Positions 1-47,898 are shown, counted from the first letter of the stretch. The stretch: DNA of 55,557 nucleotides from Macrostomum lignano (GCA_002269645.1 NIVC01004202.1:1-55557); one strand, 5' to 3'. Numbers and translations are program-made. Notes: generated by a model not told the origin, from the letters alone.

Positions 1-1868
1 ACTCACACAGGAGTGTACAGTGGCCCTAACTTCATTTATCATTAGGCATGTACACTTCAATATGCCTTATGGATTGGCCCTCAAGGCTGTTAATTGCATG
101 AGCAGACTTAGAGCCAAGCTGAGATTCTAATTTAGCCCCAAATCATATGTCAGTGGCCTAATCTAATTTAGGCACTGACATATGCTGTGCTTTAGTTTCA
201 ATGGCTACTATAGACTATATAGTAGCATTTAAGTTGAAATTTCTCTTTTTGTACTATATTTATTTGTATTATATCAGACTAAAATAGAAACATAAAAATT
301 AAGTCTAAAATTGAACAGACAATATAAAATTTCTTAGAAGAAAAAACTGTCTAGATAAAAAAACTAAAACCAAGGGAAAGCCAAATAATAAGCACTTTTC
401 AGCACTATAAGGGGCATCCAAAAGTCTTAGGACTTATTCATGTTTCTTTTTAATAGACAGCTAGAGTAACAGCAACTAATTTGTATCATAGTTGCTTTAT
501 TTACAAATGACATAAGTGAAAGAATTTTGAAAATATTACCAACTTTTTAGAAGTTATGCCTCCTTAACTATAGTAGGATAACTACATCTGCTATATGGAT
601 TTGGTTCAAAGCTTAAGGCCTTAATCAAAAAGGAGTTTGAAGCTTAGTAAAATATAGAACTTTAGATTTTAATTTAGCAACTATTAAAAACTTTTCTAGA
701 GACACATTAGATTATGATCTTTAGAAAACCTATGGCCATTTTAAATTTAAATGCCCAATGTTAAGCAATTAGCCTATTTATATAAACCTATGGTGTATCT
801 ATCAACAAGCAATTAATAAGCTTTAGCAATCTATCAATTTATTTTTTTATAACAATTAGACTAGTAAAACTTTTATTAATATAGAAATCAATACATTTTC
901 ATTAAAAATCTCTATTGGAAATAAGCTATAACTACACACATGCATAACCCTTGAATTTACACTGGCCATGCAACTTACTTTTTGATCAAAAATGCAACTT
1001 ACCTGTAAAAGAAACCTTAGCAAAAATTAATGTAATTTTAGGTAAATGGCTGGAGTAACTATGACTATATTGTTGAGGCCAAATGCCAGATTGGCTAGCT
1101 TAGCTAGGTGTTGCATATGTATATATAACTAGCTAAGGGAAACTATCTGCTAGCATATAGAAACTTATTACTAAATGCTTATACATTGCATAGTCATGCA
1201 ATTTAAATCAAGTCTGGTGCTATATGCTTCCACATTGTATTTTAATTATCTTGCCAATAGGATACATATAGCTATGTATATCTTGTAGCAAATTATTTTA
1301 CCAATAAATTGGCTTTGACATAATCATTAAAATTGGTTGTGGAGTCTCTTTTTACATGCATGCATATATTGAATGAATCTGGCTTAGATGCAATTACATT
1401 AAAAAGCCTATCTAAAATAGTTTTATGAATAGTTAATCACTTTAGCAATGAGTTGGAGCTTATTAAAAATATGTATACCAATTCAAGCATATTTGTCATT
1501 TTTTCAATGAAGGAATAATGTCATTCTTTTATAAAAAAAACCATTTTTAAAAAGATATTGAAAATGTAAAAAAGTTCTTGCATGGAAATAATCTAGATCT
1601 ATACAAATTTTGGCATAGTTGGTTTAGGTTATATATGCCACTTTGAATGTTATATTCTAATTTGTTTTAATTAAGGATTTTAATGTTCAAGTATTATATT
1701 ATTATTTTAGGCTTTTTTAATTTCAGATATATAAATTATTTGGAATTATCCATTTTGTAAGAATATAAAAAGTTGTATATAGATAAGTATAGTTTGAATA
1801 AAGTGGTTTTATCATAGTTTGGTCATATCATTATATGCTTTAAACTTTTTGCATTGGGTAGACAAGAA
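1..1868. other. CpG-void, TpA-rich decayed-repeat domain
   Basis: No CG dinucleotide found by eye before 1869; CG is frequent immediately after. Starts with a C>T/G>A-altered copy of the repeat seen at 26995-27090. Confidence 0.8.
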
Positions 1869-2505
1869 CGAAAATTGCTTCCGTAGCTCATGCACGCTAA
1901 TGTACGCCAACGAACTTTTTATCGCATACAAAAATATGCCAAAATAGAAATTACAAACTACAACTAATATTAAAAGCTTGCACAATTTTAATATTTGATC
2001 AACCTATGAGTTAAAACTGAAAATCTTTTTACTAAACTGTAGAGAACTAGTTCATTTTAACTAATTTCGTTTTACTTTTACTTTCTTGGAAAGGTTAAGC
2101 CCGGTTTTTTAAATTTAGTTTTCCATTTTTTTCGTAAAGGGCCAGCCATTCTTTCTGATCAAAATTTAGCTACTGTAACTATGTACATGGAAACTATGCC
2201 AAATGCAAACTTAATCATTTTTGTATGCTAATTATGTAGATTGATTGTTGGGACTCGGAACTCTATACGCCAAGCTGTACGCCAAGAGGGCACGCCAGGC
2301 GCCTTTGTACGCCAAGTTGTACGCCAATGTGTAATCTAGGTCCCTCTGTACGCCGGAATTTTCCGGCGTACATGTATACCATCCGGAGTCTGGCTTCTGC
2401 CATTTATCCAAAATTGTGTTAGGGTTTCTTTCAGAGGTAAGTTGCATTTTTGGTCAAAAAGTAAGTTGTATAGCCAGTGTAAATCAGGGGGGTTGCGCAT
2501 GTATG
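935..2505. mobile_element. Non-autonomous DNA element with about 86-bp diverged terminal inverted repeats
   Basis: 935-1020 is the reverse complement of 2419-2505 (core CAACTTACTTTTTGA-CAAAAATGCAACTTACCT---AAAGAAACC). TACGCCAA mini-repeats at 2265-2330 lie just inside the right arm. No TSD seen. Confidence 0.6.
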
Positions 2506-5500
2506 ATTAAAAATTATGATAAAAAGGCTTTGCAACTTTTTGCCACTAGGCCTATATGCATTTTTTTATTATCAGACCAATTTTCAAAATATAAATGTGT
2601 ATAACTTTTATTCTAGAGTCTAGGCATCTAGCAAATGAGATTTGTCACATTAGACACTTATAAAAAAGAAAATATATACTTGACTTTTAAAATCTTAGAG
2701 CTCTCTTCTACCAACTATACTAGGCCTAGGCTACTAATACTGAGTAATACATTATACTTAGGCCTTAATAATTAGCTAAAAATTTCAATTTATACTAGAC
2801 GAAATAATTTGTACATAGACAGACATACAGAGTTTTCATTTTTATAGGTATAGATATTTTACCAAGTTCTAAAAAATCTCATCAGCAGGTATAGGCCTAA
2901 TTACCCAGTTTTAGTTTGTAGGCCCTATTTTGATTTTTTATAAATGCTAGGCCTAACCCTTTTGATCTTATATCTACAGTTTTTAGTTAAGCCTACTATT
3001 AAGGCTAGGCCTAAGCCTTATTTAACTTGAGTACAAATTTATATCCTAACTTCAACAAAATATAAATAGCAATATATGCCACTAGCTTAGACATAATACT
3101 GGATAGGCCGATAATGTACACACTAGGCTAGGCCATAGGCCTAAGATAAGAAGGGTGATGGTGTGCTTGTATTGTGTCAAAAACTCAATGATCTAAGATT
3201 TAGGTAATTTTATTTTTTTAAATCTTGATTATTGTTAATTCGAAACGATCTACAGAATACTTCAAAGACTTACAATACACAATACTTAGCTCTTTGCTAA
3301 AAATAGTCTGGTTTCTGGACTCTGGTCTCGAGGACCTCAATCCCCGTTTTTTATTCAAATTCAATGTTTTTTGCAATTAAGAATAGTTATAGTGTGAAAA
3401 AACAAATAAGCATTTATTTTATGCCTTTTATTCGCAAACAATTTTAAGACTTGCGATGAAAATAAAGCTACTGTGTTTGATTTGTTAATCACATTACTTA
3501 AAAGTTTATAAATAAAGCAGGTACCCGGGAATTTTATTTGCACATATAAAATACTTGCGATTACGTCCGACGCCGGGCAAGCAGTTTTTAGGCTAGATAG
3601 AGACCAAGATCGACTTGGCAGAGAACAGACGATCGTGGAAACTCTTCGATCTCTTCTTCTTTATCGCTAGCCGTCATGGCCGTGGGCGCACCCATTCAGG
3701 CACAAGCTCCGGCCACCACTGCAGGCCCTCTCCTTCGCTGCTCTTCTTAACTTCTCAATTGTTAAAATTCTCCATTACATCTGTCCTATATGACCAATTT
3801 CTGCTTCTTTGACCCTCTTTGTCTTTCGATGCTACCATATTCTACGCTTTTATAATCTCGCTAATGGACTCCTAAACGGTAAGTCGTATAGAAAGATGGG
3901 ACTTGGTCTAGACACGAATTTTTCCGGGGAGTGCCTCAGGCTAATAAAAAATGGAGGTCCTAACTAAAGAAATAGCTAAAAATGGCCCAAAAACATGTTT
4001 TTTACTATCTCAGTAATGTATTTTTGCTCGCAGGGACTAAAAGCTATGTCTATGGCCGATTTCCCTCTGGCTGAGGCTAAGAAATCGCATCTTAATCGCC
4101 TTGTAAAACTCGACCTCCTCGGGTTATCGATGTCGAGGAGGAAAACAGGACGCTAAAAGAAACGACTTACAGAAAAACAGACTGACGTTGAAAAACTGCA
4201 AGAGGAATTCGACAACAGCCTTCTAAATTCAGTAGACCTGAGCGGCATCGACAGCAATTAACAAAGACTTGAGCAGTGGCAGTGGCGAAGGAGTGGCGAG
4301 TCAGCACACAGAAGAAGCGGATGCGTCGGAGAAGCTAAGTCAGGATTCGGAAAGTAATTAACATGACTGCATAACACCCACCGATCGATATATACTGCTT
4401 TTTGTATTTGTTATGTCATTCGATTAAATAATTATTATTAAACCTAGAAATTAACCCATTGATAGTTAAAATGCTCATTCAAACTCTATCAGTAATAGAG
4501 TTTGTTCCGTTTGATAGTGATAGAGCCTATACTTGAAAAAACGGTATTAAATAAACATTCATAGCGTGCAATGTAAAAAATCCTATTTATCGCAACTTAA
4601 ACTCCGTTGTCTGTATGTATTTACGTATGTAAAAGTGTGTATTTACGTATGTCCTGCTACTTGCAAATTCTAACACGAAATGCACATTCTACTTATCCCT
4701 AACAATAATTTACTGCACTGCAAATTGTTTACACCTTTACCCTGCATCCTATTCCATGCAATTCCAATTCCAAAAAGAGAGGAGAGAGAATTGAGGAATA
4801 GGAGAGAAGAGAGAGGAGAGAAGAAGGAAAAGAGTAGAAAGGAGAGAGGAGTGATAGAAAAGTGGAGATGGATAAGAAGAGTGAGGAGAGGAGAGAAGTT
4901 TTAAAGGCCTCAAATCTTAATTTGATACACATTTACTCCAATTTTTGTTTACCTCCATCCCCACTACTTACAAGTGTTTTTTTGAGTATGACTTTAGATT
5001 TAAAAATGCATGCAAGAACAGTTCCGGGGATTGGAATTCAGCGGGTTCAAAATCCGCGGGTTTCAACAGCTCATTCTTCTAATAAATTGCACTCATGTGA
5101 ACCCTGGCCATGTACGAGAGTACATGTACACGACTATAATGGTCTGAATTGTCTTTTTTTAATATCGTACATGTACTAATGCCTGAACCCTGAAAACTTT
5201 CAATGCTCAGAAATCAAAGTCCAAGTAGCTCACATCTGTTTTTTTTTTGAGTTTTTTTACCGAAGTTTCTTATCGAGCGACAGCCAAGGAAGCAAAAACC
5301 AATTTAATATTGAACTGTTTCGTAAACAAGGTTATAACGCGCAACACAAAAAGACTTGCTTGCCGAATGAAAATTGCATGGTTAAGATGTTTTAAAAGCA
5401 CAGAAATAGTTGGAAAATATCGCTTAACGACACCAACAGAAGACGAATGAATAGGAGAAAGATAACTAAATTAATTTTCGACTAGATCAGGCAAACTATA

Positions 5501-6661: not shown

Positions 6662-7081
6662 TCAAGCACTTTTGGGGTCTTCAGTCTTGCGCTGGGAGGC
6701 AACAAATTCCGAATAATCAATGTAGCCGTCCCCGTTGGCGTCCTCGTCCTTCAGCACCTCGTTGATGGCCTGCTCCAGTGCGGTGTCCGACATAACCTGC
6801 TTACCTTCGTCGTGGTCCAGCATCGACTTCATCAGCTCCAATCCGTCCAGTTTGTTGTTGTTATCAAAGTCGTGCATTTTGAAATAATAATATTCCTGCT
6901 CAGCCTCGCTGAGCTCTTTGCCATCCTTCGGCTTGATGCTCAGGTGCTCCATATGGGAGAACATGTGCGCCGAGTCGTGCACGTGCATTGGGTCGCCGCC
7001 ACTCGCTACCGCTGTTGGCAAAGCGTAGCTTGCCAGCGTAAGCAGTATTAGCGTCCATGGCAACGAAGTTAAATGAGACAT
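6662..7081 (-). CDS. MCFD2: Multiple coagulation factor deficiency protein 2 homolog (secretory-pathway EF-hand protein)
   Basis: Signal peptide, His-rich N-terminus, [19 protein letters not shown] and [17 protein letters not shown]-hands; single coding exon of 139 aa. Confidence 0.93.
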
Positions 7082-7122
7082 TGCTTTGTATTAGCATGCA
7101 TTGTTGCCAGTGAGAGTGAATT

Positions 7123-7202
<80 letters not shown>

Positions 7203-7230
7203 TCTATCTGTCTATATATCTATCTGTCTG

Positions 7231-7261
<31 letters not shown>

Positions 7262-7282
7262 GTCTATATATCTATCTGTCTG

Positions 7283-7321
<39 letters not shown>

Positions 7322-7350
7322 GTCTATATATCTATCTATCTATCTATCTA

Positions 7351-7397
<47 letters not shown>

Positions 7398-7413
7398 GTC
7401 TATCTATCTATCC

Positions 7414-7461
<48 letters not shown>

Positions 7462-7466
7462 GTCTG

Positions 7467-7557
<91 letters not shown>

Positions 7558-7564
7558 GTCTATA

Positions 7565-7625
<61 letters not shown>

Positions 7626-7658
7626 GTCTATCTATCTATCTGTCTGTCTATCTATCTG

Positions 7659-7721
<63 letters not shown>

Positions 7722-7726
7722 GTCTG

Positions 7727-7825
<99 letters not shown>

Positions 7826-7866
7826 GTCTATATATCTATCTATCTATCTATCTGTCTGACTGTCTG

Positions 7867-7925
<59 letters not shown>

Positions 7926-7957
7926 GTCTATCTATCTATCTATCTATCTATCTATCC

Positions 7958-7997
<40 letters not shown>

Positions 7998-8016
7998 GTC
8001 TATCTATCTATCTATC
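7123..8016. repeat. (TATC)n/(TGTC)n tetranucleotide microsatellite, about 890 bp
   Basis: Directly visible. Confidence 0.99.
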
Positions 8017-8448: not shown

Positions 8449-9235
8449 GCAATGGTGACACTGTACATTCAGGCTATTCAGGCAATGGTGACACTGTACA
8501 TTCAGGCTATTCAGGCAATGGTGACACTGTACATTCAGGCTATTCAGGCAATGGTGACACTGTACATTCAGGCTATTCAGGCAATGGTGACACTGTACAT
8601 TCAGGCTATTCAAACAATGATGACACCATGCATTCAGGCTATTCAGGCAATGGTGACACTGTACATTCAGGCTATTCAGGCAACGGTGACACTGTACATT
8701 CAGGCTATTCAGGCAATGGTGACACTGTACATTCAGGCTATTCAGGCAATGGTGACACTGTACATTCAGGCTATTCAGGCAATGGTGACACTGTACATTC
8801 AGGCTATTCAGGCAATGGTGACACTGTACATTCAGGCTATTCTGGCAACGGTGACACTGTACATTCAGGCTATTCAGGCAATGGTGACACTGTACATTCA
8901 GGCTATTCAGGCAATGGTGACACTGTACATTCAGGCTATTCAGGCAATGGTGACACTGTACATTCAGGCTATTCAGGCAATGGTGATACTGTACATTCAG
9001 GCTATTCAGGCAATGGTGACACTGTACATTCAGGCTATTCAGGCAATGGTGACACTGTACATTCAGGCTATTCAGGCAATGGTGACACTGTACATTCAGG
9101 CTATTCAGGCAATGGTGACACTGTACATTCAGGCTATTCAGGCAATGGTGACACTGTACATTCAGGCTATTCAGGCAATGGTGACACTGTACATTCAGGC
9201 TATTCAGGCAATGGTGACACCATGAATTCAGGCTA
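8449..9235. repeat. 33-bp minisatellite, about 24 copies
   Basis: Unit GCAATGGTGACACTGTACATTCAGGCTATTCAG; 11-aa periodic ORFs in three frames. Confidence 0.98.
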
Positions 9236-9404: not shown

Positions 9405-11616
9405 TTATCCCAGAGTTTCAAACAGCAGTGCCCGGTAGGCATCCAGTGCGACTTTGGTCACAAACCTGGCTGACACGGTGGCCACTTTGCTGAGCCCGCG
9501 GTCCGCCTTGTCGAACCAATCAACCACCAGCTGACCTCTGGTGACGCCGCCGGCCAGTTCAATAGTGCAACGCTTCTCCAGTACGTCTGAGGCTACGCTG
9601 GGCAGCAGGCAGATGCTGGCCGCCAGCAGGTCGCAGCTGCGATAGGCCAACGGCTGGGCCAGGGTGAGCGCGAACGTCTGAAATCATAATAATCTGAATT
9701 CATAGGTGCCTACTCTTAGTAGATAGTACGTAGCTATCCTATACTGTGTGAAAGTGAGACCGGTACACATGCTGATTAGCCTAAATAACTTTAATACAGG
9801 AAGCACTGTCTGTTGTGACACACTAAAAGTGGGGATCGAACCTCGGCGCAGGCACGCAGGCAGACCAAGACCGGTTTCTGGATTGTTGGCCTTCGTCAGT
9901 CAGCCATGGCCACACGCCAACCACACCCAGTGTGCACAGACGGTTTCTTTTATATGCTGCCGTTTCTAATGGCGACATTTTCGGGCTAGGTGAGAGATTT
10001 TACGATTCAAGTCTTTATTCGTCTACTTTTCTCAGTAGTCTTAGTTGAAATCTCTCACCTTCAGGATGCTATAATCACAGTCATGATGCCAAACTCAGTC
10101 ATGCCAGAATCAAATTTATGATGCCAGAATCAAAGTTATGATGCCAGAATCAAAGTTATGATGCCAGAATCAAAGTTATGATGCCAGAATCAAATTTATG
10201 ATGCCAGAATCAAATTTATGATGCCAGAATCAAAGTTATGATGCCAGAATCAAAGTTATGATGCCAGAATCAAAGTTATGATGCCAGAATCAAAGTTATG
10301 ATGCCAGAATCAAAGTCAGGATGCCAGAATCAAAGTCTGGATGCCAGAATCAAAGTCTGGATGCCAGAATCAAATTCAGGATGCCAGAATCAAATTCAGG
10401 ATGCCAGAATCAAAGTCAGGATGCCAGAATCAAAGTCAGGATGCCAGAATCAAAGTCAGGATGCCAGAATCAAATTCAGGATGCCAGAATCAAAGTCAGG
10501 ATGCCAGAATCAAAGTCAGGATGCCAGAATCAAAGTCAGGATGCCAGAATCAAAGTTATGATGCCAGAATCAAAGTCAGGATGCCAGAATCAAAGTTATG
10601 ATGCCAGAATCAAAGTTATGATGCCAGAATCAAAGTCAGGATGCCAGAATCAAAGTTATGATGCCAGAATCAAAGTCAGGATGCCAGAATCAAAGTTATG
10701 ATGCCAGAATCAAAGTTATGATGCCAGAATCAAAGTCAGGATGTCAAAAACAAAGTCCTGATGCCAAAATCAAACTCAAGATGTCAAAAACCAAGGCTGA
10801 AACAGGTTAAAACAAAGAACAATCCTGAACACTGACCTGACCACGCTGCATCAGGCACTGGTGAGACACAATCAGCTCATGGAGACGACGCCACAAGGGC
10901 TTAGGCTCGTCAGCAGCGTTACCACCAGCGGCCCAGGTAATCGCCCAATCAAACGGCAGGCTGCTCTCCAAGCAGGCTTCGTAAGGGACGATCAGCCTGG
11001 GACAGGGCAGCATCTCGTGCAGCACAAGGCGCGCCGCCTCCGGATCGTGTACAAAGTTGAATTCGGCGCTAAGATGGCGCTCATTATTGCCCATAGACTG
11101 ATAGGCGCCGCCCATGACTACTAGGCTTCTCAACCAGGTGCCAAGGCGCGGCTCGAGGCGCAGCGCCAGCGCAATGTTGGTCAATGGAGCCAGGGCCAGC
11201 AGGGTGACCTCGCCTTTGTTCTGCGACACCAGCTCAATCAGGCCCAGGGCGGCGTGCATGGATTCCACTGGCACAGAGTTCACCGCGGCCTCCACTTCTG
11301 ACTTTGTTGAGTCGCTAGAGGTGAGCTTCTCCCAGGCGCCGGCAATGCCATCGCTGCCGTGATAATGCGTCGCTCGGATCTCTCCATCGCCGTCTGACAC
11401 CAGCGGCCGACTGCAGCCAGCAAACACGCGTGGCGCTGGCTGTCCGGGCCAGTTAGCAGCTGCCACCACTAGGCGGGTGTTGCGAACTACTAGGTCCAGA
11501 GGAACATTGCCGCCAATGCAGGTGACAGCCAGGACCTGGGCTTGGGGACTGCGGAGCGCCAGCAACAATGCCTGAGCATCGTCCATGCCTGTGTCTACAT
11601 CAATTATGAGCTTCAT
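9405..11616 (-). CDS. Inosine/uridine-preferring nucleoside hydrolase family protein; exons 11616-10837 and 9677-9405
   Basis: DVDTGMDDAQA Ca-binding motif, HGSDG, LAPLTNIA, AEFNFVHDPEAA. A phase-0 GTCAGT...TTTCAG intron joins QRGQ to TFALTLAQPLAYRSCDLLAA. Confidence 0.92.
10085..10795. repeat. 20-bp intronic minisatellite, about 32 regular copies plus decayed ends
   Basis: Unit ATGCCAGAATCAAAGT(TATG/CAGG), inside the nucleoside hydrolase intron. Confidence 0.98.
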
Positions 11617-11666: not shown

Positions 11667-11926
11667 GCAGCTCATGTCTTATGCGAGGCCAAGAAAGAAA
11701 AGTACCAATACAATTATTTTTAAAGGCATGAGAGCAATCAACTCCCAGTCTGTCTGGCTGGCTAAGTGCACCCCAAACCCCAAGCTAGGCTAGTGCAGCT
11801 CATGTCTTATGCGAGGCCAAGAAAGAAAAGTACCAATACAATTATTTTTAAAAGGCATGAGAGCAATCAACCCCCAGCCTGTCTGGCTGGCTAAGTGCAC
11901 CCCAAACCCCAAGCTAGGCTAGTGCA
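11667..11926. repeat. Tandem duplication of about 128 bp, two copies
   Basis: GCAGCTCATGTCTTATGCGAGG...GCTAGGCTAGTGCA starts at 11667 and 11795; copies differ by two C/T changes and one indel. Confidence 0.95.
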
Positions 11927-13019
11927 TTTGCATTGCTCAAATGAATGACTGGCAGGCTTATATTATTAAGAGCCTATTATAATAAAGAAAATATATTTCT
12001 TTTACCAAGAAATACAAAATAGTTTTCTTTTTTGCATAGGTTTAATAGGTTTATGGCTTATTATATTAAAATTATAGTTTGAACCTTTAGTAGAATAAAT
12101 AGGGGTCTTGATAAATAGTGTCTAATGCACTTTTGAAAAATTGAATATATGGCCCCATAAAAAGTGTGTATGCATTACACACAATGTATACTACACTCTA
12201 GATCATATAGTATGCCCAAAAATATAGGTATGCATTGGCCTTGCAAGCCAAAAGTTAGGCATGCATAATTGGCATGCATGACTCCTAAGAAAATAGTGTC
12301 TATATACCTAGTATGCACTTTATAAAACTATATGAAACCCTGCTGCATTGGAATAAATATTGAAAACTTATGGATGTGCACTTTAGAATAGAGTCAAATT
12401 ATTTTACTGCATTTTAGCATATTAGATGTTCTAAAAAAGCATTTTCTGTAACATATCAAATTGGCTAATTTTCTTAAATTAAAAATTAAATTTACCAAAA
12501 TCAAAATTTAGAAAAACAAAGTTTAGTATGACTAACATTCACTTTTTTTACTTTTTATTTACTATTTAAACAAAACAAAAAAATATACATTTATATGTAG
12601 CAGAAATTAGTTTTGCAGAAATTAGTTTATTTTTAGCCACTTTTTTCAACATTTCCAAAATTTTACCTTCAGAATTTTTTCAAAATTTTTAAAACAATAC
12701 GTAACATTATAAATGACACATGTATAGGCCCTTTCCACAGAGGCATCAGGCCCCCTTCTATATATATTTACAAGCTGTTGAAACCTGCAGATTTTGAACC
12801 CGGGGAACTCCATTCCCTAGAATTATTTTTGCATGTATTCTAAAATCTGAGGTCAAACTCAAACAAAAACTTGTTTATAGTTAGGACAGAGTTAAACATA
12901 AAATAGAGTACATTCGTTTAAAATTAGGATTTGAGGCAAACATTTATATTGTTGGCTGGGATGCAGCGCAGAATGTCAGGCAAACTCTGGCTACCATCTC
13001 TGCCTCTCCCTAAATCCCT

Positions 13020-14530
<1,511 letters not shown>

Positions 14531-15199
14531 TCATCTGGCCCGCAGCCATGAGCTTGATTCTTTATCTGGCCTTTGACATAAAAATCTGCCGATCCTTGCT
14601 TCGAAAGCCAGTTTGTGGGACATAGTACTATCATGGTTGTTATCATTTCTCACGCTTTAATAACGTCATCTTTCTGGCCAATTAGCAGCCCTGAGATGAA
14701 GTTGTGTAACTCCAGCTCTACCACAGTCTGCAGCAGTTTAACAACCAAGGAAATACGCATTTCTTAGGAGCCATTTAAATTTTAAAGTACCTTATGCTAA
14801 CATAATATTGAACTTTTCATGGTATGCGTAACTAATTTAGTAGGATTGCATTGTAATCAGTTATTAATTATTTTTTTGCTATTTTTACAAACCATCCATA
14901 TCGCCTTGATTTGCCAATTGCCATCAACTATTAAACTGCTGCAGACTATCTATACAGAGGACATTGGTTTGAATCTCTCGCTAAACTGTCTCTCCTCTCC
15001 ACACCCCTCCACTCGCAAGGTGCAGAGAAGGCTATTAAAGTGATTCCAAAACACTGTACATTCGCTATGTACATTGAGCCCTATTGCCTGACCCTTCGTC
15101 TGGGCTGGGGGAATGAGTGAGTGAGCGCCGCTGCGCCACAAACAACAGAAAAAGCAGACAAATTTCACATGCTTACAGTTTCTGTTCTGTTTGAGTTGA

Positions 15200-15772
15200 G
15201 TTACAGAGTTGAGACTTTACATTTAGACAGAGAATAAGTCAATGCAGAATTGTGTCAAGTTTGAAGTTAATCGCTTCCTATGGAGCAAACTTATGGCAGC
15301 TGAAAGTTAGTCAATTTTAAAACCCCTTTTACACATCTCTCCAGATAAGGGAAAGAGAGGCAGGCAGACAGAGGTTGGGGTGGCTGTCTCGCTGAAAAAA
15401 GCAGCCTAACTTTAAAAGTGCACAGTGCCATTTAGGATCAACTTTGAAACTGAAAATTTTACACGATTGTGTTAAAATAGTTGAAGATTACCTGTGTCAA
15501 ATTTGAAGAGAATCAGTAGAAGTGGAGCGCCGCTATGGAGGATTTAGTGAAAAAATCGCGCATTTTAAGCAGTTTTATGCACTTTAAGGTGGGAAGACTC
15601 AAATTTAGGAAATTTAAAAGTAGCCTAAGACATTCTCTGTAGCCATTTTAGGGTGGGTCTAAAATTTGGTGTCATTTGGTTGAGTGGTTTAGGAGTCTAT
15701 AGCGATCAAATTTGTACATAGATACACACACACATACACACAGACAGAGTTTTGATTTTTATAGGTAGAGAT
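15200..15772 (+). mobile_element. Possible Helentron/HINE (DINE-1-like) non-autonomous element; related end at about 2790-2860
   Basis: The end AATTTGTACATAGA-(CA/AC microsatellite)-CAGAGTTTT-ATTTTTATAGGTA(G/TA)GAT occurs at both sites. Family assignment is from recalled architecture only. Confidence 0.4.
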
Positions 15773-17842: not shown

Positions 17843-17894
<52 letters not shown>

Positions 17895-27095: not shown

Positions 27096-27099
27096 GCCG

Positions 27100-31471: not shown

Positions 31472-31773
31472 GTTGTTACAGCACCGACTTTGGCGTTGTT
31501 ATTACAGCACCGACTCTATGGTTGTTACAGCACCGACTCTATGGTTGTTACAGCACCGACTCTATGGCTGTTACAGCACCGACTCTATGGTTGTTACAGC
31601 ACCGACTCTATGGCTGTTACAGCACCGACTCTATGGTTGTTACAGCACCGACTCTATGGTTGTTACAGCACCGACTCTATGGTTGTTACAGCACCGACTC
31701 TATGGTTGTTACAGCACCGACTCTACAATGGTTGTTACAGCACTGCCTCCAGAGTTGTTACAGCACCGACTCC
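31472..31773. repeat. 23-bp minisatellite, about 13 copies
   Basis: Unit GTTGTTACAGCACCGACTCTATG. Confidence 0.97.
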
Positions 31774-32236: not shown

Positions 32237-35200
32237 TCACAGGCTCATTGTGCACTGCAGAAAGTCGTCATAGGAGAACTGGCAGGTGCCGGTCTCGCCG
32301 TTGTGCTGCATCCGGTCGCGGGCTCTGAAAGCCTCCGTGTAGGTGCGCAGACGCACCGACAGGGTCACGAAGTCGTCGAAAGCAACCAAACAGCGCCCGT
32401 CGTCCATGGCCTTTGAGTAGCGCTTGAGCAGCATTGTCATGGATTTGGCCGACAGGCGGTACAGAAACCGACTGCTGATGATGTTGTGCAGCTCGTTAGC
32501 CTCGATGAAGCCGCTTCTATCGCGATCGTATTCCTGGAAGGTGCGGTGCCAGTAGAGCAGGCAGGTGAGCAGCTCTCTGAACTCGGCGTATTGCATGACG
32601 CCATCCCGCGATCTGTCCAACATGGCCAGCATGATTTTGCACAGCTCCAGCGACCAGGTGACTCGGTAGTAATTGCGGATGCTGGGGTGCTCGTTGAGGA
32701 TGCGGCACAGCTCTTCAGCCTGGATGCCGCCCAGACTCTGAGACGAGTAGTGCTGAAACATGCCGATGAACTCGTCCTCGCTGTTGAACTGGAAGCTCTG
32801 AAAGTGATAAATAAGATTATTTTGCATGCTAAAGTACAGTAAACTACAAGTACAGATGATAAAATTATTGGGGCTTGTAAAAGTGTTTGCCGGAAATTTG
32901 CTGTTGGTTAAGACCCATTTCGGACATGCAGAGATACTTTACTAACAGTAGTATGAACCGAACTTTAGAGCATATATAATGGTTGACTTTTTATTGGAAA
33001 TGAATGCTGTTCACCTACCGCTTAGGTGCGCGTACTTCTGCAGATTTAGGGGTGCACGTTCTATGATATTAGAGGTGCAAACTGTCTATAAATAAGAAGT
33101 GCTTTATTAACCTTCGCCTGATGGCAATAAATATCGAAATCACGCGTCACGCTGCCTACAACAGAGTCGCTTCTTATGTAAAATTGCTCAGTTCAGCGTG
33201 TTGATCAAGTACACGGTCTGGCCGGCTAATTTACAATCGGAAATATGGAATGGTCTTGCTAGGCTGCGCTATCTTATCCAATCACAGCAGCCAATCAAAA
33301 TGAGGCTACGCGATACTCTTCCCTCACCCCTTGGCCTGCATTAATAATTCTAGCCACCTTCTAACTCATCGGGTGTCAAGTCACTGCAGCTGAAAGAATA
33401 AGCTAGTGGAAGTTACTGAAGCGACTGTCACAATGGCCGACCAACCGCAGACTGTGCCGCTGTTCAAGCAGCACCAAGACGAGAGTCTGTGGCGGGCTGA
33501 CCAACTGCTGGCCGCTCTGCCTGACGAATATTTCCCATCTGGCGCTGCGAGCAGCAGCACACCGCAATGCCGCTGCCACCTTAGCAGACATTCCTCCCAG
33601 CCATTAGGGCTTCTACAGAACTACCCGCAGTCTCCGGGCAGCCTGAGCTTCAGCTGCAGCAGCTTGCTCAGCTTCTCCGATTCCACGGACGCCAGCAGCC
33701 GCAACGCAGACGAGAAACAGCTGGCCGAAGCGGCGCGCCAGTTCAGCCTCGCGCGACGCGAGGAGACGCAGCTGCGCGGCCAGCTGGCTGACCTGGACGA
33801 TCGGTTGGCGCGCCTCCGTGACCGAGCCGGCGGCGAGCGGGCTTGCATGCTTCTGACGCTCCGCCGCGTGTCTGTCGAACGGCTGCTGGCCGGCCTGGCC
33901 TCCAGGGCCGATGCCAAAGCCAAAGAAATTGCTGCTTTGAAGGAGCAGCGGAAACTAAAAGAAACTAATAGAAAAGGTAGCAATTGTGACGATAAAAACT
34001 TGAGCGACAGCGGCAGTGACAGCGAAACTTCGGATGACTTCTAGACCAATTAGAGTCAGGTAATAATTCAATCACCATTGAATCCGATTCGAATTCGCGC
34101 CAAAATGGACAGTGTGTTTGGTGTGTTTAAATGTTTTGTTTTGTTTAACCATGTCCATTGAATAGCATTATGGCGTTTATTTAAATTGAATTTCAGCCCA
34201 TACTTTCAATGTAAGTTTTGCCGTGTCAATTGTTGTCAACTCAATATTCGGTCTTTGTCTTTGTTTTGCCATACACGATAGCAACATGAAGGAATGTTCA
34301 ATTGTTTTTAAAACAGTTAAATTTTTGTTTTAATCCATGGTTTTATTCTGCTAATAAGCAGATTTTTAATTGTTTTGCTCGCTGGGTCAGGCTGAAATCT
34401 GCTTAAAAATCCTTTGATTTGTTTGACTATTTGACTAAATCAAGCCTGAGCTGTGGGCTGACTAAACGCTGTTCCCATGTAAATAAAAATTTGTTTTTGT
34501 TTTGCTAAGCCTGGTCACTGTTTTTACGTATTATGCATCCTGGCATATTTTATTGTCATATTGCTATGTTGCATTCTTTGTCTTCCAGAGGAGAGCTTCG
34601 CTTCCTCAGGTTGCTGTCGACAGTTTTATGCAATCCTAATACTCTTTCATTCTTTTTAATAGCTATCGTCATCGTACAGCTTCTCGAAGTTTGAGAATTG
34701 TACTAAAATGGAATTCGAATAAAACTACTTAGTTTGGATCCTTGGCTTCAGGTCTCTACCACCAAATGCAAAGTATAAGTGCGCAGCTGCTATTTATTGC
34801 CCCAATTGGTATAATTAGTATTTCGCATGGAGCTAAAAATAGAATTGCCAAATAATATAAACTGCCGCTGCAGCAGTACGGATTCAATTTAAGTTACCCC
34901 GCTTTTGTTTTATTGATTTCAATTTCAGCCAGCGAAGAGGCACGCTGACCCCTGAGCAGTTTCATGTAAGGCAAGCGGGCACACAGGATGTACATCGGCC
35001 CTGATTTTCTAATCAGGGGTTGGCCCTCGTGGGCGGGCCAATTTACGAGCACAAGCCTAAAATTTGAGGGTTCGAACCCGCGGACGCCCGTTAACTGCCC
35101 CAGCAGTATTTCTTTTTTCTTCAAAGAATTCATGTAAGCACTTGTAATTTTTCTCCTTTGATGGCTGCTGATGATGAATGTACCAGTCAGCATTAAGAGC

Positions 35201-40454: not shown

Positions 40455-40886
40455 TCAGCTCCTCGGTCGTTCCTTCTTGCCGCGGAACAGCGCCCACAGA
40501 GACACGTTGGCCACCTTGACAATCTTGAACCGGACGCCGGGAATGTCGCCGACGGCGTGTCCGGCTCGGCCGAATCCGGACACCAGTACCTCGTCGTTTT
40601 CCTCGATGAAGTTCAGACAGCCGTCGTTAGGCACGAAAGCGGTGATCTTCTTGCCGTTCTTGATCAGCTGGACTCTGACGCACTTCCTGATGGCGCTGTT
40701 GGGCTGCTTGGCCTCGACGCCGATCTTCTCAACCACGATGCCCTTGGCGTGGGACGCGCCGCCGAACGGGTTGGCCTTCCAACGGGTGCCCAGGTGAGAC
40801 TTTTTGTAGTCCTTGTCTGCCCAGCGCTGCTCGCGTCGGTTATTGCGTAGCTTGCGGGCGGTGCGAATACCGGCTGGCTTGCCCAT
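40455..40886 (-). CDS. RPS23: 40S ribosomal protein S23 (uS12), intronless CDS
   Basis: [13 protein letters not shown]...[25 protein letters not shown]...KERPRS, 143 aa. Confidence 0.99.
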
Positions 40887-42203
40887 GCTGTCCGGTCAGT
40901 GCGGCTGCAGCAGTGAATGGCATCGGATAGTGGCAGACTGATAATCAATTGATAATCAATAATCAATATGAAACAACTTTTGTGCGATTTTAGTCACTGA
41001 AGCGACGGTATAACAACTGTGGGCCGTAGTGTCGTATTTGAGGCGTGCTACCTATAGTCGCTGAGTCGTGTTTGAAGCACACTAACTAGCCTACTGAGTT
41101 AGTAGAAAGTTAAGCGCCAACACGATTCTTAGACGACTCTTTTACGATTCTTCAGTTTACCTGACGCGCTTGTGATGCGATGGTCACCTCTGTCAAATTA
41201 GTCGTTAAAGAGTCACAAAAGTCGTCCCAGAGTGGCGGCTAGAGTCACTTAAGTTGTTTGCAAAGACTTTTTAGCGATTTTTTGTCACAGTATCATTTTA
41301 AGGGCTGGCTACCTTGTAAAATATATTGGCTTCATCTACAAATAGCCACATAGATCCAGGGTACTTCAGCAACATTAAAACAAAGATCAAAAAGCTCAGT
41401 GGAAAAATTTTGGTGGGAAAAGGTTGCAGGCAATTATGATGGACCCATAACCTGAACCTAGGATTTTTCAATGTCATGACCCATTGACCCATCAAATTAT
41501 TTTTTTTACACTTTTGATGGATGCCAGCTTATACCTTAGTTTTCCATTTGGCATCCTGAAGTGAGACCAAGAATACAATGATTCTAATAATTAAAATCCA
41601 AATATAATTTTTTTTGTTTAACTGACATTAAAAAATATAAATTGTGATAGCCCTGATAGGGAATAATTTTGCCAAATAAGTATTTAGTTTCAAGTATATG
41701 TATCCTCATTAATTTTTACTTATAGTAGCAGTAATTGCATATGTTATATTGTCTAAACAGAAAACAGCTTTCTTTTGTTTAAGTTACTTTCTGTTTTAAT
41801 CCCTACTGTTTTATTTAAAAAAATCAATGGTAGCTAATAATAGCAAACTAAGCTTTTCCCAGTTTTTTACTATATATAATATAAAGCCTTAATCTAGAAG
41901 AGAAAAATGCAACTGCTAAAACTTTAATTTTTTCTTCTTGATATAATTATAAATAACTTTGCAGTGCAATTAGCATAGCCTATATAAAAAAGAAGCACTA
42001 AACAAATTATAAAAAAAGAAAAAAATTGAAAAAAAAGTTTCTTGACTTTTTTATAGAGAAATTTTTTATAAATTTGGCCATTCTTATCACTGGGATATAG
42101 ATATGCTAATACCAGGATCCGGTTTTGAAAAATACTGGTTTTGGGCCATTTTTTGATATGTGTATCCCAATATTAGTCCAGTATTGGTCTAAAACTGTCT
42201 ATA

Positions 42204-45200
42204 CACGCCTCCCCTGAAGAGAGAGTCCGGTCAATGAAATACACCCCAAAAAATATTGATTTCCCATGAATCTATGACCCAACAGAAGTCCAAAAAAGCA
42301 ATAGTTGAAATCCTATCGCATTGTCTGCATAGTGTACAGGTATGCTAATTAGTACAGTGATTTTTAGTACCAGGTAGGTACTACAAGAAGAACAAGAAGG
42401 TCTGAGAGAACATGGCAACCATCCTGCAGCAACGAAAATGCTAAAACAAGGTAGAATTTACGTTTCTGTTCATTCTCCGTCACTTATGGTTCATTAATAG
42501 TATTTCTATTACCTGTCCATACCTGTGTACACCTGAAAATTATGTTTTTGCATACTATATTGTGCTGAATTCACACCAGGGCGTGTATCTTCACACTTAT
42601 CATTGTACGAGCGTATTTACATGTATATGCTCGTGGCTCAAAATAAATTGAATTCAATATTCTGGCTGCAGACTTTTCTTTCTGTTTCAATAAGCTATTT
42701 GGCCCACAGACGTCTCCAGATGATGAGGCAGTCAGAACTAGGAGACAAGTTAATTCCAGTGTTTTCTTCAGAACAAAAAGAAATAGCAAGCAGCAGCTGC
42801 TACACTTTTACTAAACTTTTACTGAAATTAAAGTTACTGTAAGTGAGACAACTAGCTATGAAAATGAAAAGGGTATATTTGAGTGAGATACTCTAGGTCG
42901 ACATTTATAAGCTGAGTGAAAGCGTACAATACACGATTGAGTGTGATATGGGGTGGGGCGATCAATAATTTGGGGGAATGTACGTATGAGCTACATAAAT
43001 ATGCATGCAATATATTAGACTAATTGAGCGTGCAGGTAGAAATACAAGAAAGAATAAAAAAAAATACCGCGACACTGGCTGCTCCAGAACAATGCCAAAC
43101 AACAAGCGCTCACATGAAGAAAATCGAAGATGTGTGTGCATATTGTGCTTTCGGAAGGGAGACCGACCGCTGACAGCCACTCTTGAAGTGCTGATTGAAT
43201 GCCATGTGCTGCCAGGCTTCGCTGACCATCGTGGATTTCTGCCTTTAAGCATCTGCAACTCCTGCAGAATCAAGCTGATGTCACAAAGCAGCCCTGCACC
43301 AACACCTCTGCCGCCAAAAATGCCCTACGAGCAAGTTATTGCAGATCTGCGCTGTCTTCCGCCACTCACTCGCGAACGCCCCGATTGCAACTGCTGGGTG
43401 TGCCATGTGGGCTCCAGCAGAGCCAACAAGAATGTGGCTGTATATCACCCTTTCATGCCAGATGAGTCTGCTGCTGGTATTGCGACGCCACTTGGTCGAT
43501 TTATGGACTCTGGAGTGAAAAAGATCCTCATCCTGGCCCTTGTTGAGGATGTCAAAGAATGCTACCAGAACGTTAGTGTACTAATGTCAACCATCGACAT
43601 CAGCTCCATTAACTTCACGTTGGCCTGCGATTTTAAACTGGCAAACATAATCAGCAGGATCCAGAGCCATTCTTCATCGCATCCCTGCCTGTACTGTGAG
43701 GGCAGGCCTCCATGGGAAGTACCAGCACAAAGGAGGACGCTCGGCTCAATTCGACACCTGGCAAGTGAGTTTCAGGCAGCTGGTGGACACCAGCCTCTAG
43801 CCAAAAACTTTGCCAACTGCGTCCAGCCTCCACTGCTACCTGGGAGCGATTCTGCTGAACTGCTGGACGTGGTACCACCGCCAGAGCTGCACATGATGCT
43901 TGGCATTGTGAACCGATTGCTTGATGCTCTCAATGCAAGCTGGGGTGGCAACAAGGCCTACGAGTGGGCCTATGAAGCAGGCATCTGCAGGCAGCAGTAT
44001 CATGGAGGTTGCCTGGAGGGCCCAGCGTGCAAAAAGCTCCTTCTGAAGGCGAGTGAGCTGTGGAGCGTGCTGCCTCCACACCTGAAGCTCTACGCAACAG
44101 CACTTCAAGACTTCAATGCTGTGCGCGAAGCTTGCTTTGGCCAAAGTCTGGCAGCTGATTACAGTCTCTACATTGCTCGCTTCCAGACGACATGTAGGTA
44201 CCTCGAGCTTTCAGTTACGCCAAAGATGCACGCGCTTTTTGACCATGTGCCAGCGTTCTGCGGCAAGTATGGCAAGGGGCTTGGCAGCTTTAGTGAACAG
44301 GCTGTTGAATCAGCCCACAGTGACTTCAAAGCCACCTGGCAGCGCTATAAGCGCCCCCTAAATCATCCTCAGTATAGCACGTGTCTACTGCAATCCATCA
44401 TAAACTATAATTCATTTCACATCTGAGCCAAATATGTCATAACTTGTAACTTGCAAATTCCAATTTACTACTGCCAAGATAACTACAAGTAAACTGTTGA
44501 AAAAAGTAGTTAGTAGTTAGTACATTGGTTTTGCTGTTACATTCAATGCTTGTATTTTGACAACCCACTAAACTCGTATGTTTGTATTGGGTAAAGCAGA
44601 AAGTTGTCGCAGGTTTTAAGGCCTTCTATGAAATGAAGTGCTTGAAGTACATGTAATGGTACTGTATCACAGTAGCTGGAACTTGAATTCGGGTTTGCTC
44701 TACATCAGTCAATGCATGTCTTTTTTATTCTGCAGCACACAAGGCTTCCAGAAATTCTGTAGGCTTATCTTCGCAAATTGCAAGAACTTTCTGTTTTACT
44801 AAATATTGTACTAGCTTTAACAACTATTCTAGCTATTTTACTCTAGTTATCCTACCCGTGCCCTATTGCAGCGCATGGCTTAAGTACGCCAGACGCCTAC
44901 ACAACCTGCGCCACGCTGTGAAATGACTTACCTGTGAAAGAAACCCTAAAGCAAAATTAACCCAAAATTAACGTTTTGGGTAAACGGCAGGAGTAACTAT
45001 GACTGTCTTATCAAGCCTAAATGCCTCGGCATCTAATTAGTACCGCGCCGCGCCATACTAATCGCCGCTCCCCGTACTAATCGCCGCGCCGCGCCGTATT
45101 AGATCTGCGCCGGACGCCGTCCGCCAAAATGCCCATGCGCTGCAATCAGGTACCCGTGTAGTCATTTGCCGCCAAAATAAGCTTGTAATTCCCAATGACC

Positions 45201-45683
45201 TCTGCTTATGCTTTCTGTTTTTGCGAAACTTTTCTCTCTTCAATAGTTACTGGCTTTGTTTTGACTCTCAGTGCCAGTCTATCGCTGCACTGCTCCAAAA
45301 ACTTTAAAAAATTGAAAACGTTACTAGGAAAACACAAGCTCCATGTGTAAATTAATCTCAGTCAGGTATGGACAGGTAATAAAAATACTATTAATGAACC
45401 ATAAGTGACAGAGAATGAACAGAAACGTAAATTCTACCTTGTTTTAGCATTTTCGTTGCTGCAGGATGGTTGCCATGTTCTCTCAGACCTTCTTGTTCTT
45501 CTTGTAGTACCTACCTGGTACTAAAAATCACTGTACTAATTAGCATACCTGTACACTATGCAGACAATGCGATAGGATTTCAACTATTGCTTTTTTGGAC
45601 TTCTGTTGGGTCATAGATTCATGGGAAATCAATATTTTTAGGGTATATTTCATTGACCAAACTCTCTCTTCAGGGGAGGCGTG
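42204..45683 (+). mobile_element. Chapaev-type (CMC/Transib-related) DNA transposon, 3480 bp
   Basis: CAC...GTG termini; TIRs 42204-42525 and 45363-45683; 4-bp TSD TATA at 42200-42203 and 45684-45687. Confidence 0.9.
43092..44426 (+). CDS. Chapaev-like transposase, probably internally deleted
   Basis: Chapa-type zinc finger H-X7-C-X2-C...PLSICNSC, CNCWVC; RAG1/Transib-like motifs CDFKLANI...HPCLYCE, PPELHMMLG, PKMHALFDH, FSEQAVESAH. Confidence 0.85.
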   Translation: MPNNKRSHEENRRCVCILCFRKGDRPLTATLEVLIECHVLPGFADHRGFLPLSICNSCRIKLMSQSSPAPTPLPPKMPYEQVIADLRCLPPLTRERPDCNCWVCHVGSSRANKNVAVYHPFMPDESAAGIATPLGRFMDSGVKKILILALVEDVKECYQNVSVLMSTIDISSINFTLACDFKLANIISRIQSHSSSHPCLYCEGRPPWEVPAQRRTLGSIRHLASEFQAAGGHQPLAKNFANCVQPPLLPGSDSAELLDVVPPPELHMMLGIVNRLLDALNASWGGNKAYEWAYEAGICRQQYHGGCLEGPACKKLLLKASELWSVLPPHLKLYATALQDFNAVREACFGQSLAADYSLYIARFQTTCRYLELSVTPKMHALFDHVPAFCGKYGKGLGSFSEQAVESAHSDFKATWQRYKRPLNHPQYSTCLLQSIINYNSFHI

Positions 45684-47898
45684 TATATTTTTAAAAATTT
45701 GTGATTTTTTGTTTAAATTACATTTTCCTAGAAATTAAAATATGTTTTGCCTTAGCTTTTTAGCTTTGAATTTACTTGGGATTTGGGGATTTCTTAGAAT
45801 TGGGGAAATGTATGCTACTATAAAGAGTAAGCCTAGGGATATTCCTAGTGGCATAAATGTTAGAGTAGCAAGACAGTCTAATCAGTCTAAGGGAGAAAGA
45901 GGAAAAGGGCTACACAGTAGATTGGAGTTGCCTAGGAAACAGGTGTGCCAATGGGGAATTTCAATAGCTAATGGGGAATTCTAACAGTTAAATGGGGAAT
46001 GTTAGCATAGAGAGTAGGATATTTAATAGTGGACTAAAGAGGTAGGAAGGCAGAATGCCTAATGAATCAATGCTAAAGCCTAATAGCAATTGCTAGAATA
46101 GGGCAGTCAAGCACAAGTTGAAGTTCTTCTTCACCATATATTTGCTTGTATTTATAGTAATTTATAGTAATATTTATAGTAATTTATAGTAGACAATTAT
46201 TAACAAAATTTAAGCAATAATATATAGGCCTATATAATAAACATAAAAAAGCAAGGCAATATATTTAACTACTTAAAAATGAAAATAGAATTGAAACTAT
46301 GAGTAGAAGATACATGATTTTTTGTGATCTATTCAACAAACAATAGGCCTATAGCTGTATTAAGGCAAATATGATAAAGTAATCAATAAGACAATAAGGT
46401 AAGGCTAGTAAGAATGCTACTAAAATGATAACTACTATAACTACACAAACAATTACTACTACTTCACAAATTGATTGGATTTAAAAGTCAGGACAATTCA
46501 GTAAATGATTTATAATGCATTTAAAAGATAGGCAATAAAAAATAGGTAAAATGCAATAAAATTTGACTTTTTGAAATTTGGGAGCCAAAATATGAAAAAA
46601 GCTATTGAATAACAGTATTCAAAACTGGTATTGGCGAAATTCCAGTATTGAATACCAGGATCCCTGTTTTGGGCAAGTCTGGTATTTAGCATCCCTATAT
46701 CCCTAAACTACATCTTTTTAATGAAATAGGCATACCAGTTTAAATGGTCAGTTTAACATAAAATAGAAAGTCATTTAGAGGGGCCAAGTAATATTAATAA
46801 TTATATATTATATTTTCTATTTCCAAATAGAAAGCAGCTTTAAAGTGTTTAGGTCTGCAATTTTCAGTGATAATAGCTTCTGTGTAATATAGCTCCTGAC
46901 AGCTTCTATTTGGTAACTTCTTTGACATGCTTGAAATTAAGGAAAGTTATGAGTGATTTTTTTCACAGATAGACCAAGGTCCCAATGAGTTCAGACTCCG
47001 GGCTGAACCGCATTTTAACCCGCATTTTGACCCGCATTTTAAAACTAGGCCCAAAGGCCCAAATTAGCTTTTTAGATTTTAACCCGCATTTTAAAACTAG
47101 GCCCAAAATTAGCAATTTAGATATCACCACCGTCAGAGCTTCGGACACGAGTTAAATTTATTCAAAAATGTAGAAAGTAGAACAAAAAGTAAAAAACAGG
47201 TTTTTAATAAGAGCAACTAATTTTAAGTCAAAAGCCTAGTTTTTTATTTTTAATTTTAAAAAAGCTATATAGTGCCGCAATAAAATGAGGCAAAAAATAT
47301 TTCGGTGGGAATTGACTCCCTGTATTGATGCTATTTTAGACCCTGGCGCTGGCGAACGAAATATGTTTGGCTTTGGCACCCTGTCTGTGTCGCTACTTGC
47401 TAGTGACCACACATTCAAGCTAGAATAGCTAGACTAGAAAATTTTAGTTTAAACTGCTGTTGAGACTTTCGACTTACAACAACCAAAGGACCCAATGATC
47501 AATTCTTGGGTACTTGCATGTAAATGTAACATTCACACGCATGCTTTTATACATGTACTAGTACTTACAGTACTTGTTAGCATCATCTGTTCCTCATCAA
47601 CAGCGGCACCTTCCGATAGTGGGTTGAGTCGAATCTGGTGGTCCTTTATATGGTGGTTAGTCAAGCGTAAGCGCGAGTAACGAGCGTACATCATGTATTT
47701 TGACTTTGGGGACGCTGAAGTGCTTAACACGTACGAGCGTACATGTACACGTGTAGAAAAAAAAGAAAAAACCAGCAATTTTTATATAGTAAACGGAAGA
47801 TATATTTTCAAGCATTTACCAAATAATTGCACGCTGTCAACAAACGGTCACGCTACTAGCAACTGTTCTTGTAAAAAAGCTTGTAAAAATACTCGTAA

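Follow-up and report, generated by a model that had tools for sequence, protein, structure and literature searches.

CpG-free intergenic spacers of the flatworm Macrostomum lignano: a CpG-directed mutational footprint that probably reflects regional germline methylation

The contig NIVC01004202.1 of the flatworm Macrostomum lignano (assembly GCA_002269645.1, that is Mlig_3_7), analysed here over its full length of 55,557 bp and referred to below as the window, contains intergenic spacers from which the dinucleotide CpG has almost vanished, while the genes beside them keep it at ordinary frequency. The footprint, made up of composition, junctions, substitution spectra and the polarity of changes, is of a known kind in an unusual arrangement, as spacers are voided, gene bodies are spared and depletion is near-total; from it we infer methylation as the cause, and regional CpG methylation of non-transcribed spacer and transposon DNA in the germ line, followed by deamination, is the reading that we consider probable. 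The window was compared with a sister copy on contig NIVC01000352.1, positions 22066-74606 (pieces L005, L014 and L013), which is collinear with window positions 1-47486 at 95-98% identity and may be a homeologue or a haplotig, the argument being independent of which. The survey of such voids covered 313 kb of the genome at 12 other loci, plus the window.

An earlier reading made from the sequence alone (the sequence-only reading) had reported domains in which CG is absent or nearly so, with abrupt edges at 1869 and near 16294, and had ascribed them to a system resembling fungal repeat-induced point mutation (RIP). The blocks themselves are real, as are the abrupt edges at 1869 and approximately 16296: over seven AT-rich non-repetitive blocks (6917 bp pooled) just 3 CG were counted where about 145 were expected, an observed/expected ratio (o/e) of 0.02. 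The blocks, the last of which was absent from the earlier account, are as follows:

1-1868, CG-free run, 0 CG with 37 expected (P ~9e-17)
11813-12699, CG-free run, 0 CG with 18 expected
15704-16295, CG-free run, 0 CG with 13 expected
19047-19842, CG-poor run, 1 CG
41276-42119, CG-free run, 0 CG with 17 expected
45681-46998, CG-poor run, 1 CG
2497-3108, CG-poor run, 1 CG

The depletion is confined to CpG, with GpC as internal control: the same pooled sequence has an o/e of 1.78 for GpC, 1.14 for CpA and 1.04 for TpG. As compared to AT-rich DNA of normal CpG content, the voids have a TpA o/e of 1.00 (0.83 in the comparators), a (CpA+TpG)/(ApC+GpT) index of 1.33 (1.15) and a TpA/ApT ratio of 1.07 (0.96), the last being a small shift in the direction that RIP would give and one that two-step decay from CpG through TpG to TpA also predicts. 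The proposed targeting of CpA is contradicted by these values, as CpA and TpG are not depleted and the substrate index lies above that of the comparators. Six further CG-free runs (7065-8015, 10021-10843, 13075-13836, 24204-24767, 25739-26183 and 54191-54824) are simple tandem repeats and were not counted.

Across the 313 kb and the window 24 complex CG-free runs of at least 400 bp were found, together about 23 kb, and windows with a GC content below 0.30 are bimodal for CpG o/e, 23 of 37 lying below 0.2 and 13 of 37 at or above 0.6. Self-BLAST, and BLAST against the 313 kb, gave only short shared fragments, by which the possibility that the voids are one repeat family was rejected; they are unique sequence, without paralogues in the sample except for the homeologous copies. 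A CpG-free consensus is not the explanation for the voids, since they are common to no sequence family.

When the window was aligned with the sister contig, the six domains originally listed were resolved, on sequence evidence, into three spacers, A (1-3108), B (11813-20227) and C (41276-46998), each interrupted by CpG-bearing mobile elements. Their parts, and the elements lodged in them, which include members of a miniature inverted-repeat transposable element (MITE) family and elements with terminal inverted repeats (TIRs), are:

1-1865, left part of void A, GC 0.28, 0 CG with 37 expected, continuing past the left end of the window
2-86, plus strand, copy of an ~85-bp dispersed repeat in void A, both consensus CpGs replaced (one by TG, one by CA), with further G>A changes
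968-1087, plus strand, old MITE-family relic in void A, all 6 CpGs of the young member lost
1866-2496, CpG-bearing transposon fragment with GTACGCC motif repeats, splitting void A, its CpGs running from 1869 to about 2400
2497-3108, right part of void A, 1 CG, dense in TAGGCC/TAGGCT motifs
11813-12756, left part of void B, 0 CG in 11813-12699
12757-15703, old dispersed repeat with a CT-rich low-complexity core, inside void B in the window and the sister contig alike
15704-16350, middle part of void B, 0 CG in 15704-16295
16351-20053, hAT-like insertion present in the window only, terminal inverted repeat TAGGGACTnnAGTGAG, 7-8 bp target duplication CTATAAT
20054-20227, right end of void B, contiguous with 16350 in the sister contig
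41276-42200, left part of void C, 0 CG in 41276-42119
42201-45681, plus strand, young DNA transposon of 3481 bp, ~320-bp TIRs at 42206-42525 and 45363-45686, truncated open reading frame (ORF) at 43005-44426, 109 CpGs
45682-46998, right part of void C, 1 CG, bordered at its far edge by the next upstream gene's CpG-normal 3' flank

Most of the abrupt void edges, as comparison with the sister contig shows, are transposon junctions. The edge at 1865 is a transposon or deletion junction, since the sister contig has 437 bp more of the GTACGCC-motif element at precisely this point, and the two halves of void C are one spacer, as they were split by the young transposon at 42201-45681, an element that the sister contig lacks and of which L006 and L007 hold copies at 99-99.75% identity. 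Two insertions are conversely present in the sister contig only, a 293-bp MITE with 21 CpGs at window position ~800 in void A and a 1092-bp MITE-like insertion with 24 CpGs at ~12190 in void B. The edges look abrupt on two accounts: void DNA has received young transposons whose CpGs are intact, and the voids end at promoter and transcript boundaries. The claim that CpG loss is restricted to sharply bounded domains stands in this form, with the exception of the domain given as 19090-19840, which is the CpG-poor, AT-rich interior (19047-19842) of the recently inserted hAT-like element and is thus truly intrinsic to a transposon.

The relics inside the voids, as their alignments show, arrived with CpGs and lost them afterwards, mostly by transition to TG or CA, as had been proposed. 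The ~85-bp repeat at 2-86 reads TG and CA where five other copies read CG (two of two CpGs lost), and in the MITE relic at 968-1087 all six CpGs of the young member are gone, five to TG or CA and one to CT, so that seven of the eight lost sites in these two relics read TG or CA. Over all alignable pairs of void and non-void copies, the void copy reads TG, CA or TA at 42 of 63 CpG sites, and the proportion of C>T by 3' neighbour was 0.39 for CpG, 0.22 for CpA, 0.18 for CpC and 0.17 for CpT. The four differences formerly quoted between the repeat at 2-86 and its 81% identical relative at 26994-27075 are all present; the two CpG losses and CTGAC>CTAAC had been polarised correctly, whereas GTGCAC>GTACAC had not, as four further family copies carry GTACAC, which is the family state. 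A cytosine that follows G is spared from C>T, at 1/167 as compared to 20/616 in window 14364-15772 and 12% as compared to 20% in void relics, and survivorship of such cytosines would explain the excess of GpC (1.78) and of GGCC in the voids.

All 24 voids of the sample are intergenic, and at seven different genes the void begins about 30-530 bp upstream of the gene's 5' end:

10807-11616, minus strand, first coding exon of a nucleoside hydrolase (inosine-uridine), void B starting 197 bp upstream of its ATG
40455-40886, minus strand, intronless RPS23 gene with a CpG o/e of ~1.1, void C starting 390 bp upstream of its ATG
left of the window, seen in the sister contig, a tRNA-methyltransferase-type gene, ~414 bp from void A
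RPS23 paralogue, void-to-gene-start distance 200 bp
phosphatidylserine synthase gene, void-to-gene-start distance 0-275 bp
eIF2B-family gene, void-to-gene-start distance 531 bp
asparaginase gene, void-to-gene-start distance 31 bp

On its opposite side a void meets a CpG-normal 3' flank of 1.3-3.5 kb that belongs to the upstream gene. Within gene spans, AT-rich windows (introns) have a CpG o/e of 0.7-0.9 and GC-rich exon windows 0.9-1.15, and the housekeeping genes for RPS23, an eIF2B subunit and phosphatidylserine synthase lie at about 1. The suggestion that voids are simply all old neutral DNA was rejected, as introns and 3' flanks retain their CpGs.

Decay is seen in progress in one stretch of spacer B:

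14395-15915, hypermutation patch in the comparison of window and sister contig, covering the 3' part of the old dispersed repeat and 200 bp of adjoining void

In this patch 47 transitions and 7 transversions separate the two copies, as compared to 86 and 73 elsewhere (P = 8e-6), and 13 of 27 CpGs differ by a transition as compared to 44 of 929 elsewhere (P = 3e-10); 13 of the 14 CpG differences are transitions, and 12 of the 13 losses fall in the sister copy (P = 0.003), in which 12 of the ~26 CpGs of the old repeat have been lost since the split. The old repeat has a CpG o/e of 0.45 in the window and 0.29 in the sister contig, and it is ~82% identical to two copies at locus L001. Polarisation with these two outgroup copies assigned 23 of 27 substitutions in the sister lineage, and 9 of 15 in the window lineage, to GC>AT; by context, the sister lineage changed at 9/50 CpG (18%), 6/187 CpA, 5/212 CpT and 3/114 CpC. 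CpG is thus preferred about 6-fold (18% as compared to 2.7% for non-CpG), and non-CpG C>T stands at ~2.7% in the sister copy's lineage as compared to ~1.4% in the other lineage (14 and 7 events). Nominally CpA is the most mutated non-CpG context (11/187 as compared to 10/326), which is not significant at P = 0.16, and several TpG>TpA changes lie at the void edge 15833-15871. Sorted by 5' neighbour, C>T amounts to 4.5% for CC, 3.2% for AC, 2.2% for TC and 0.6% for GC (small numbers), and by our own count, again of small numbers, the C>T and G>A events form 15 strand runs where ~16 are expected. Gene conversion was rejected as the cause of the patch, as the changes are nearly all GC>AT transitions while the paralogues differ by many transversions. 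The spectrum is that of a local, copy-specific and ongoing C>T process that favours CpG, and in this sense the claim of a domain-restricted, cytosine-directed decay has held up.

Away from the patch no such process is visible in overall divergence, which between window and sister contig is 1.64% in the voids and 1.6-1.9% elsewhere; general hypermutation of the voids was rejected on this account, and the process must be CpG-directed. Non-CpG G/C transitions outside the patch reach 3.0% in the voids and 2.5% in AT-rich non-void DNA, and with this the claim of raised non-CpG C>T within the domains falls. In AT-rich non-void DNA 10 of 190 CpG dinucleotides show a transition, per site the same as the non-CpG rate (2.5%), and genic DNA shows no excess of CpG transitions between window and sister contig. 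As an observation in its own right, transitions and transversions away from the patch are about equally frequent (86 to 73), an unusually low ratio for animal nuclear DNA. The three copies of the young transposon of void C differ by 12 transitions and 1 transversion, 7 of these 13 differences being at CpGs.

These observations would be accounted for as follows. The voids would be non-transcribed intergenic spacers together with the transposon relics that they have absorbed, and would be, or very recently have been, densely CpG-methylated in the germ line via DNMT1/DNMT3. Deamination of 5-methylcytosine (5mC) to thymine would turn CpG into TpG/CpA far faster than other changes occur, and an AT-biased drift that spares C in GpC would take GC down to ~29%. 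Transcription units, here taken to include the 3' flanks and ~30-530 bp of proximal promoter as well as exons and introns, would be exempt and would hold a CpG o/e of 0.7-1.1, and an embedded transposon would be eroded once the mark spreads onto the element, which may differ between the two gene copies. According to passages of PMC11292947 and PMC9246332 that cite Wasik 2015, M. lignano retains DNMT1 and DNMT3, while 5mC in the adult is described as low in passages of PMC11292947 and PMC10658182 citing the same work. A low bulk 5mC fits the proposal, because the target compartment has almost no CpGs left, and a compartment that has burnt nearly all its CpGs could explain the reported value.

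Several points weigh against the proposal. The sample comprised just 0.37 Mb, from a genome that reportedly consists for the most part of repeats, and the excess of CpG differences inside the voids proper (4/7) is biased by the way in which voids are defined. An o/e of 0.02 at equilibrium would, by a rough estimate, need CpG decay at ~50-200 times other rates, which exceeds the usual deamination of 5mC under repair, and the depletion is about ten-fold deeper than that of mammals and vertebrate bulk DNA (o/e ~0.2). In the patch non-CpG C>T also looks ~2-3-fold raised, a rise not predicted by CpG-only methylation; together with the depth of depletion this leaves room for a more active deamination or for absent G:T repair. 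The window copy of the old repeat lost 1-2 CpGs and the sister copy 12, so that targeting must vary between copies. Finally, a second and still younger transposon family (5 copies, 139 CpGs) gave no signal as a test of transposon-directed CpG decay, just 2 of its 15 private changes being CpG transitions, and since this youngest family lacks a CpG transition bias not every transposon is hit at once. A bolder form of the proposal, which is speculative and in our judgement unlikely though not far-fetched, is that M. lignano has an inverted mosaic in which the germ line marks spacers and lodged transposons, not gene bodies, and in which C>T proceeds too fast for passive 5mC decay (CpG ~50-200 times background, other contexts 2-3 times, GpC spared); if true, it would be a mutagenic genome defence in an animal, able to strike one homeologous copy only.

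An enzymatic or otherwise non-canonical C>T hypermutation of spacer and transposon chromatin, preferring CpG and with some activity in all contexts, is an unlikely alternative to passive decay of methylated CpG, for which DNMT-catalysed deamination, an AID/APOBEC-like deaminase or methylation without G:T mismatch repair would be candidates. It would account for the extreme depth of depletion, for the nearly pure GC>AT spectrum of the patch with its raised non-CpG C>T, for decay that is burst-like and restricted to one copy, and for the sparing of the GpC cytosine. The non-CpG excess amounts to 14 as compared to 7 events only, however, the strand runs, from small numbers, give no sign of strand-coordinated clustering, the equally few changes by 5' neighbour reveal no clear TpC or WRC preference, and off-patch non-CpG rates in the voids equal those of other AT-rich DNA.

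An intrinsic or selected composition, by which promoter-upstream spacers are kept AT-rich and CpG-free because they serve nucleosome exclusion, factor binding or a similar role, or derive from CpG-less element families, we regard as quite unlikely. The consistent placing of voids 30-530 bp upstream of gene 5' ends agrees with it, as do the intrinsic domain at 19047-19842 and a vocabulary peculiar to the voids, in which the palindrome TAGGCCTA is ~26-fold and GGCC ~7-fold enriched. Against it, the void relics once had CpGs and lost them mostly by transitions, the voids freely accept kb-sized insertions, with different ones in either copy, their divergence keeps pace with that of other DNA, and no sequence family is common to them.

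It is improbable, too, that the voids are the fossil of a past methylation regime, such that the process has stopped and everything that now bears CpGs arrived later. The low adult 5mC described in the passages cited above would suit such a history, CpG-bearing AT-rich DNA has shown no CpG hypermutability since the copies split, nor is any seen in the youngest transposon family. Since that split, nevertheless, the old repeat has lost almost half of its CpGs in the sister copy, and the number of CpGs in the voids is, by a rough estimate, about what mutation creates in 1-3 times the copy-split time, because of which decay must have gone on until very recently.

A RIP-like genome defence, in which a repeat-sensing machinery deaminates C, chiefly CpA to TpA, in duplicated DNA, is very improbable, and this interpretation is largely refuted. 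In RIP, CpA is mutated far above other contexts, and duplicated sequence is acted on while unique DNA is spared. The slight rise in TpA/ApT, the TpG>TpA changes in the repeat at 2-86 and at the void edge 15833-15871, and the nominal lead of CpA among non-CpG contexts lean towards it. In the patch and in the pooled void and non-void pairs CpG by contrast leads the contexts by a wide margin, CpA comes next and equals or exceeds CpT and CpC, and void divergence overall equals background. Repeats are evidently neither target nor trigger, as the voids are unique sequence and two transposon families with copies 99-99.97% identical retain 109 and 139 CpGs, as does a 97% identical tandem duplication its own, these true repeats being essentially free of mutation. 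An assembly, polishing or contamination artefact can be dismissed as extremely improbable, as we found no points in its favour, the same voids occur in the independently assembled sister contig (95-98% identity) and at three further paralogous loci, and they are flanked by ordinary M. lignano genes.

Among known systems, the voids resemble methylated compartments such as vertebrate bulk DNA and the methylated transposons of plants, fungi and some invertebrates, where loss is CpG-specific, yields TpG/CpA and leaves GpC unaffected, CpGs are kept in unmethylated islands, and young insertions stand out as CpG-rich. Unlike the vertebrate pattern, gene bodies including introns are spared, the protected unit being the whole transcription unit and not a promoter island. 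Bimodal, domain-wise CpG o/e and the reported presence of DNMT1 and DNMT3 are shared with the mosaic methylomes of oyster, Ciona, honeybee and annelids, albeit with inverted polarity: there the gene bodies of broadly expressed genes form the low-CpG class, whereas in M. lignano housekeeping genes have an o/e of ~1 and intergenic spacers are depleted (exons 0.9-1.15, introns 0.7-0.9, 24 of 24 voids intergenic). Relics of fungal RIP are likewise AT-rich, sharply bounded blocks made by C>T with transposon relics inside, from which the voids differ in that the target is CpG and not CpA, CpA/TpG are not depleted, the blocks are unique and repeats that are nearly identical have been left alone. A further parallel lies in epialleles, where methylation spreads out of heterochromatin into adjacent transposons, as one of two 96% identical embedded repeat copies lost 12 CpGs and the other 1; direct methylation maps have shown such spreading in plants and mammals, whereas in M. 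lignano it is the mutational footprint that suggests it.

The methylation pattern of M. lignano is stated not to have been described. The prediction that follows from the proposed germline methylation is that the methylated compartment consists of intergenic spacer and embedded transposons, which would invert the gene-body methylation usual in invertebrates, and it is directly checkable by 5mC calls on long reads. The voids moreover flag promoter-proximal boundaries, and, the genome being difficult to annotate, CpG content offers a means of dating its transposon insertions.

Several minor observations were made on the void sequence and the elements within it. Voids at many unrelated loci are strongly enriched in the palindrome TAGGCCTA and its rotations (for example at 2497-3108, 15938, 16050, 46227 and L006:4891-6556), with TAGGCC ~26-fold, AGGCCT 22-fold, CCTAGG 12-fold and GGCC 7-fold enriched in voids and at expectation outside them. 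No longer consensus was found around the motif in voids, and it might go back to a (TAGGCC)n repeat now decayed or to the footprint of transposon excision, or be a binding site; the ends of the window's hAT-like element, TAGG...CCTA, may be compared with the second of these options. Two related families of TIR DNA transposons, represented at window 42201-45681 and in L006, L007 and L008-L012, encode a ~680-aa protein with homologues in beetles and many environmental assemblies; Pfam gave no domain in the ORFs of either family. As compared to the copies of L006 and L007, the window copy is ~700 bp short, so that its ORF is truncated to 473 aa, and an exact-protein look-up of this ORF gave no match. 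At 99% identity it agrees with a protein that bears the name of M. lignano, in line with the earlier view that the DNA comes from an animal genome. The exact RPS23 product of 40455-40886 is likewise encoded on contigs of GCA_002269645.1, and the ORF at 24973-25347 has identical coordinates in NIVC01004202.1.

Tandem repeats are conspicuous in the contig, about 12% of which consists of tandem arrays, with very dense micro- and minisatellites, several of them intronic or adjoining genes. These micro-/minisatellite arrays lie at:

7123-8016
8449-9235
10061-10783
13044-14363
24079-24692
25739-26116
31472-31779
49424-49947
54215-54820

Most minisatellite units in the window are also without CG. A GC-rich minisatellite 3' of RPS23 (L004:10702-11341) is CG-free in L002 and L004 and has ~30 CpGs in L003, and such arrays may have been homogenised after CpG loss; the comparison of L003 with L004 was not used, as the alignment of tandem arrays is unreliable and their units are not independent. 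Rfam and tRNA scans of the window gave no matches.

As regards the neighbouring genes, one and the same 143-aa RPS23 protein has coding copies at no fewer than three distinct loci. Those of the window and of L002-L005 lack introns, with 94% nucleotide identity between the two locus types, while the copy in L001 has introns, which suggests that the intronless copies are expressed retrocopies. An exon of a penta-EF-hand (sorcin-like) gene is present as a tandem duplicate at 29735-30268 and 32237-32827, the two copies sharing 79% DNA identity and both being CpG-normal.

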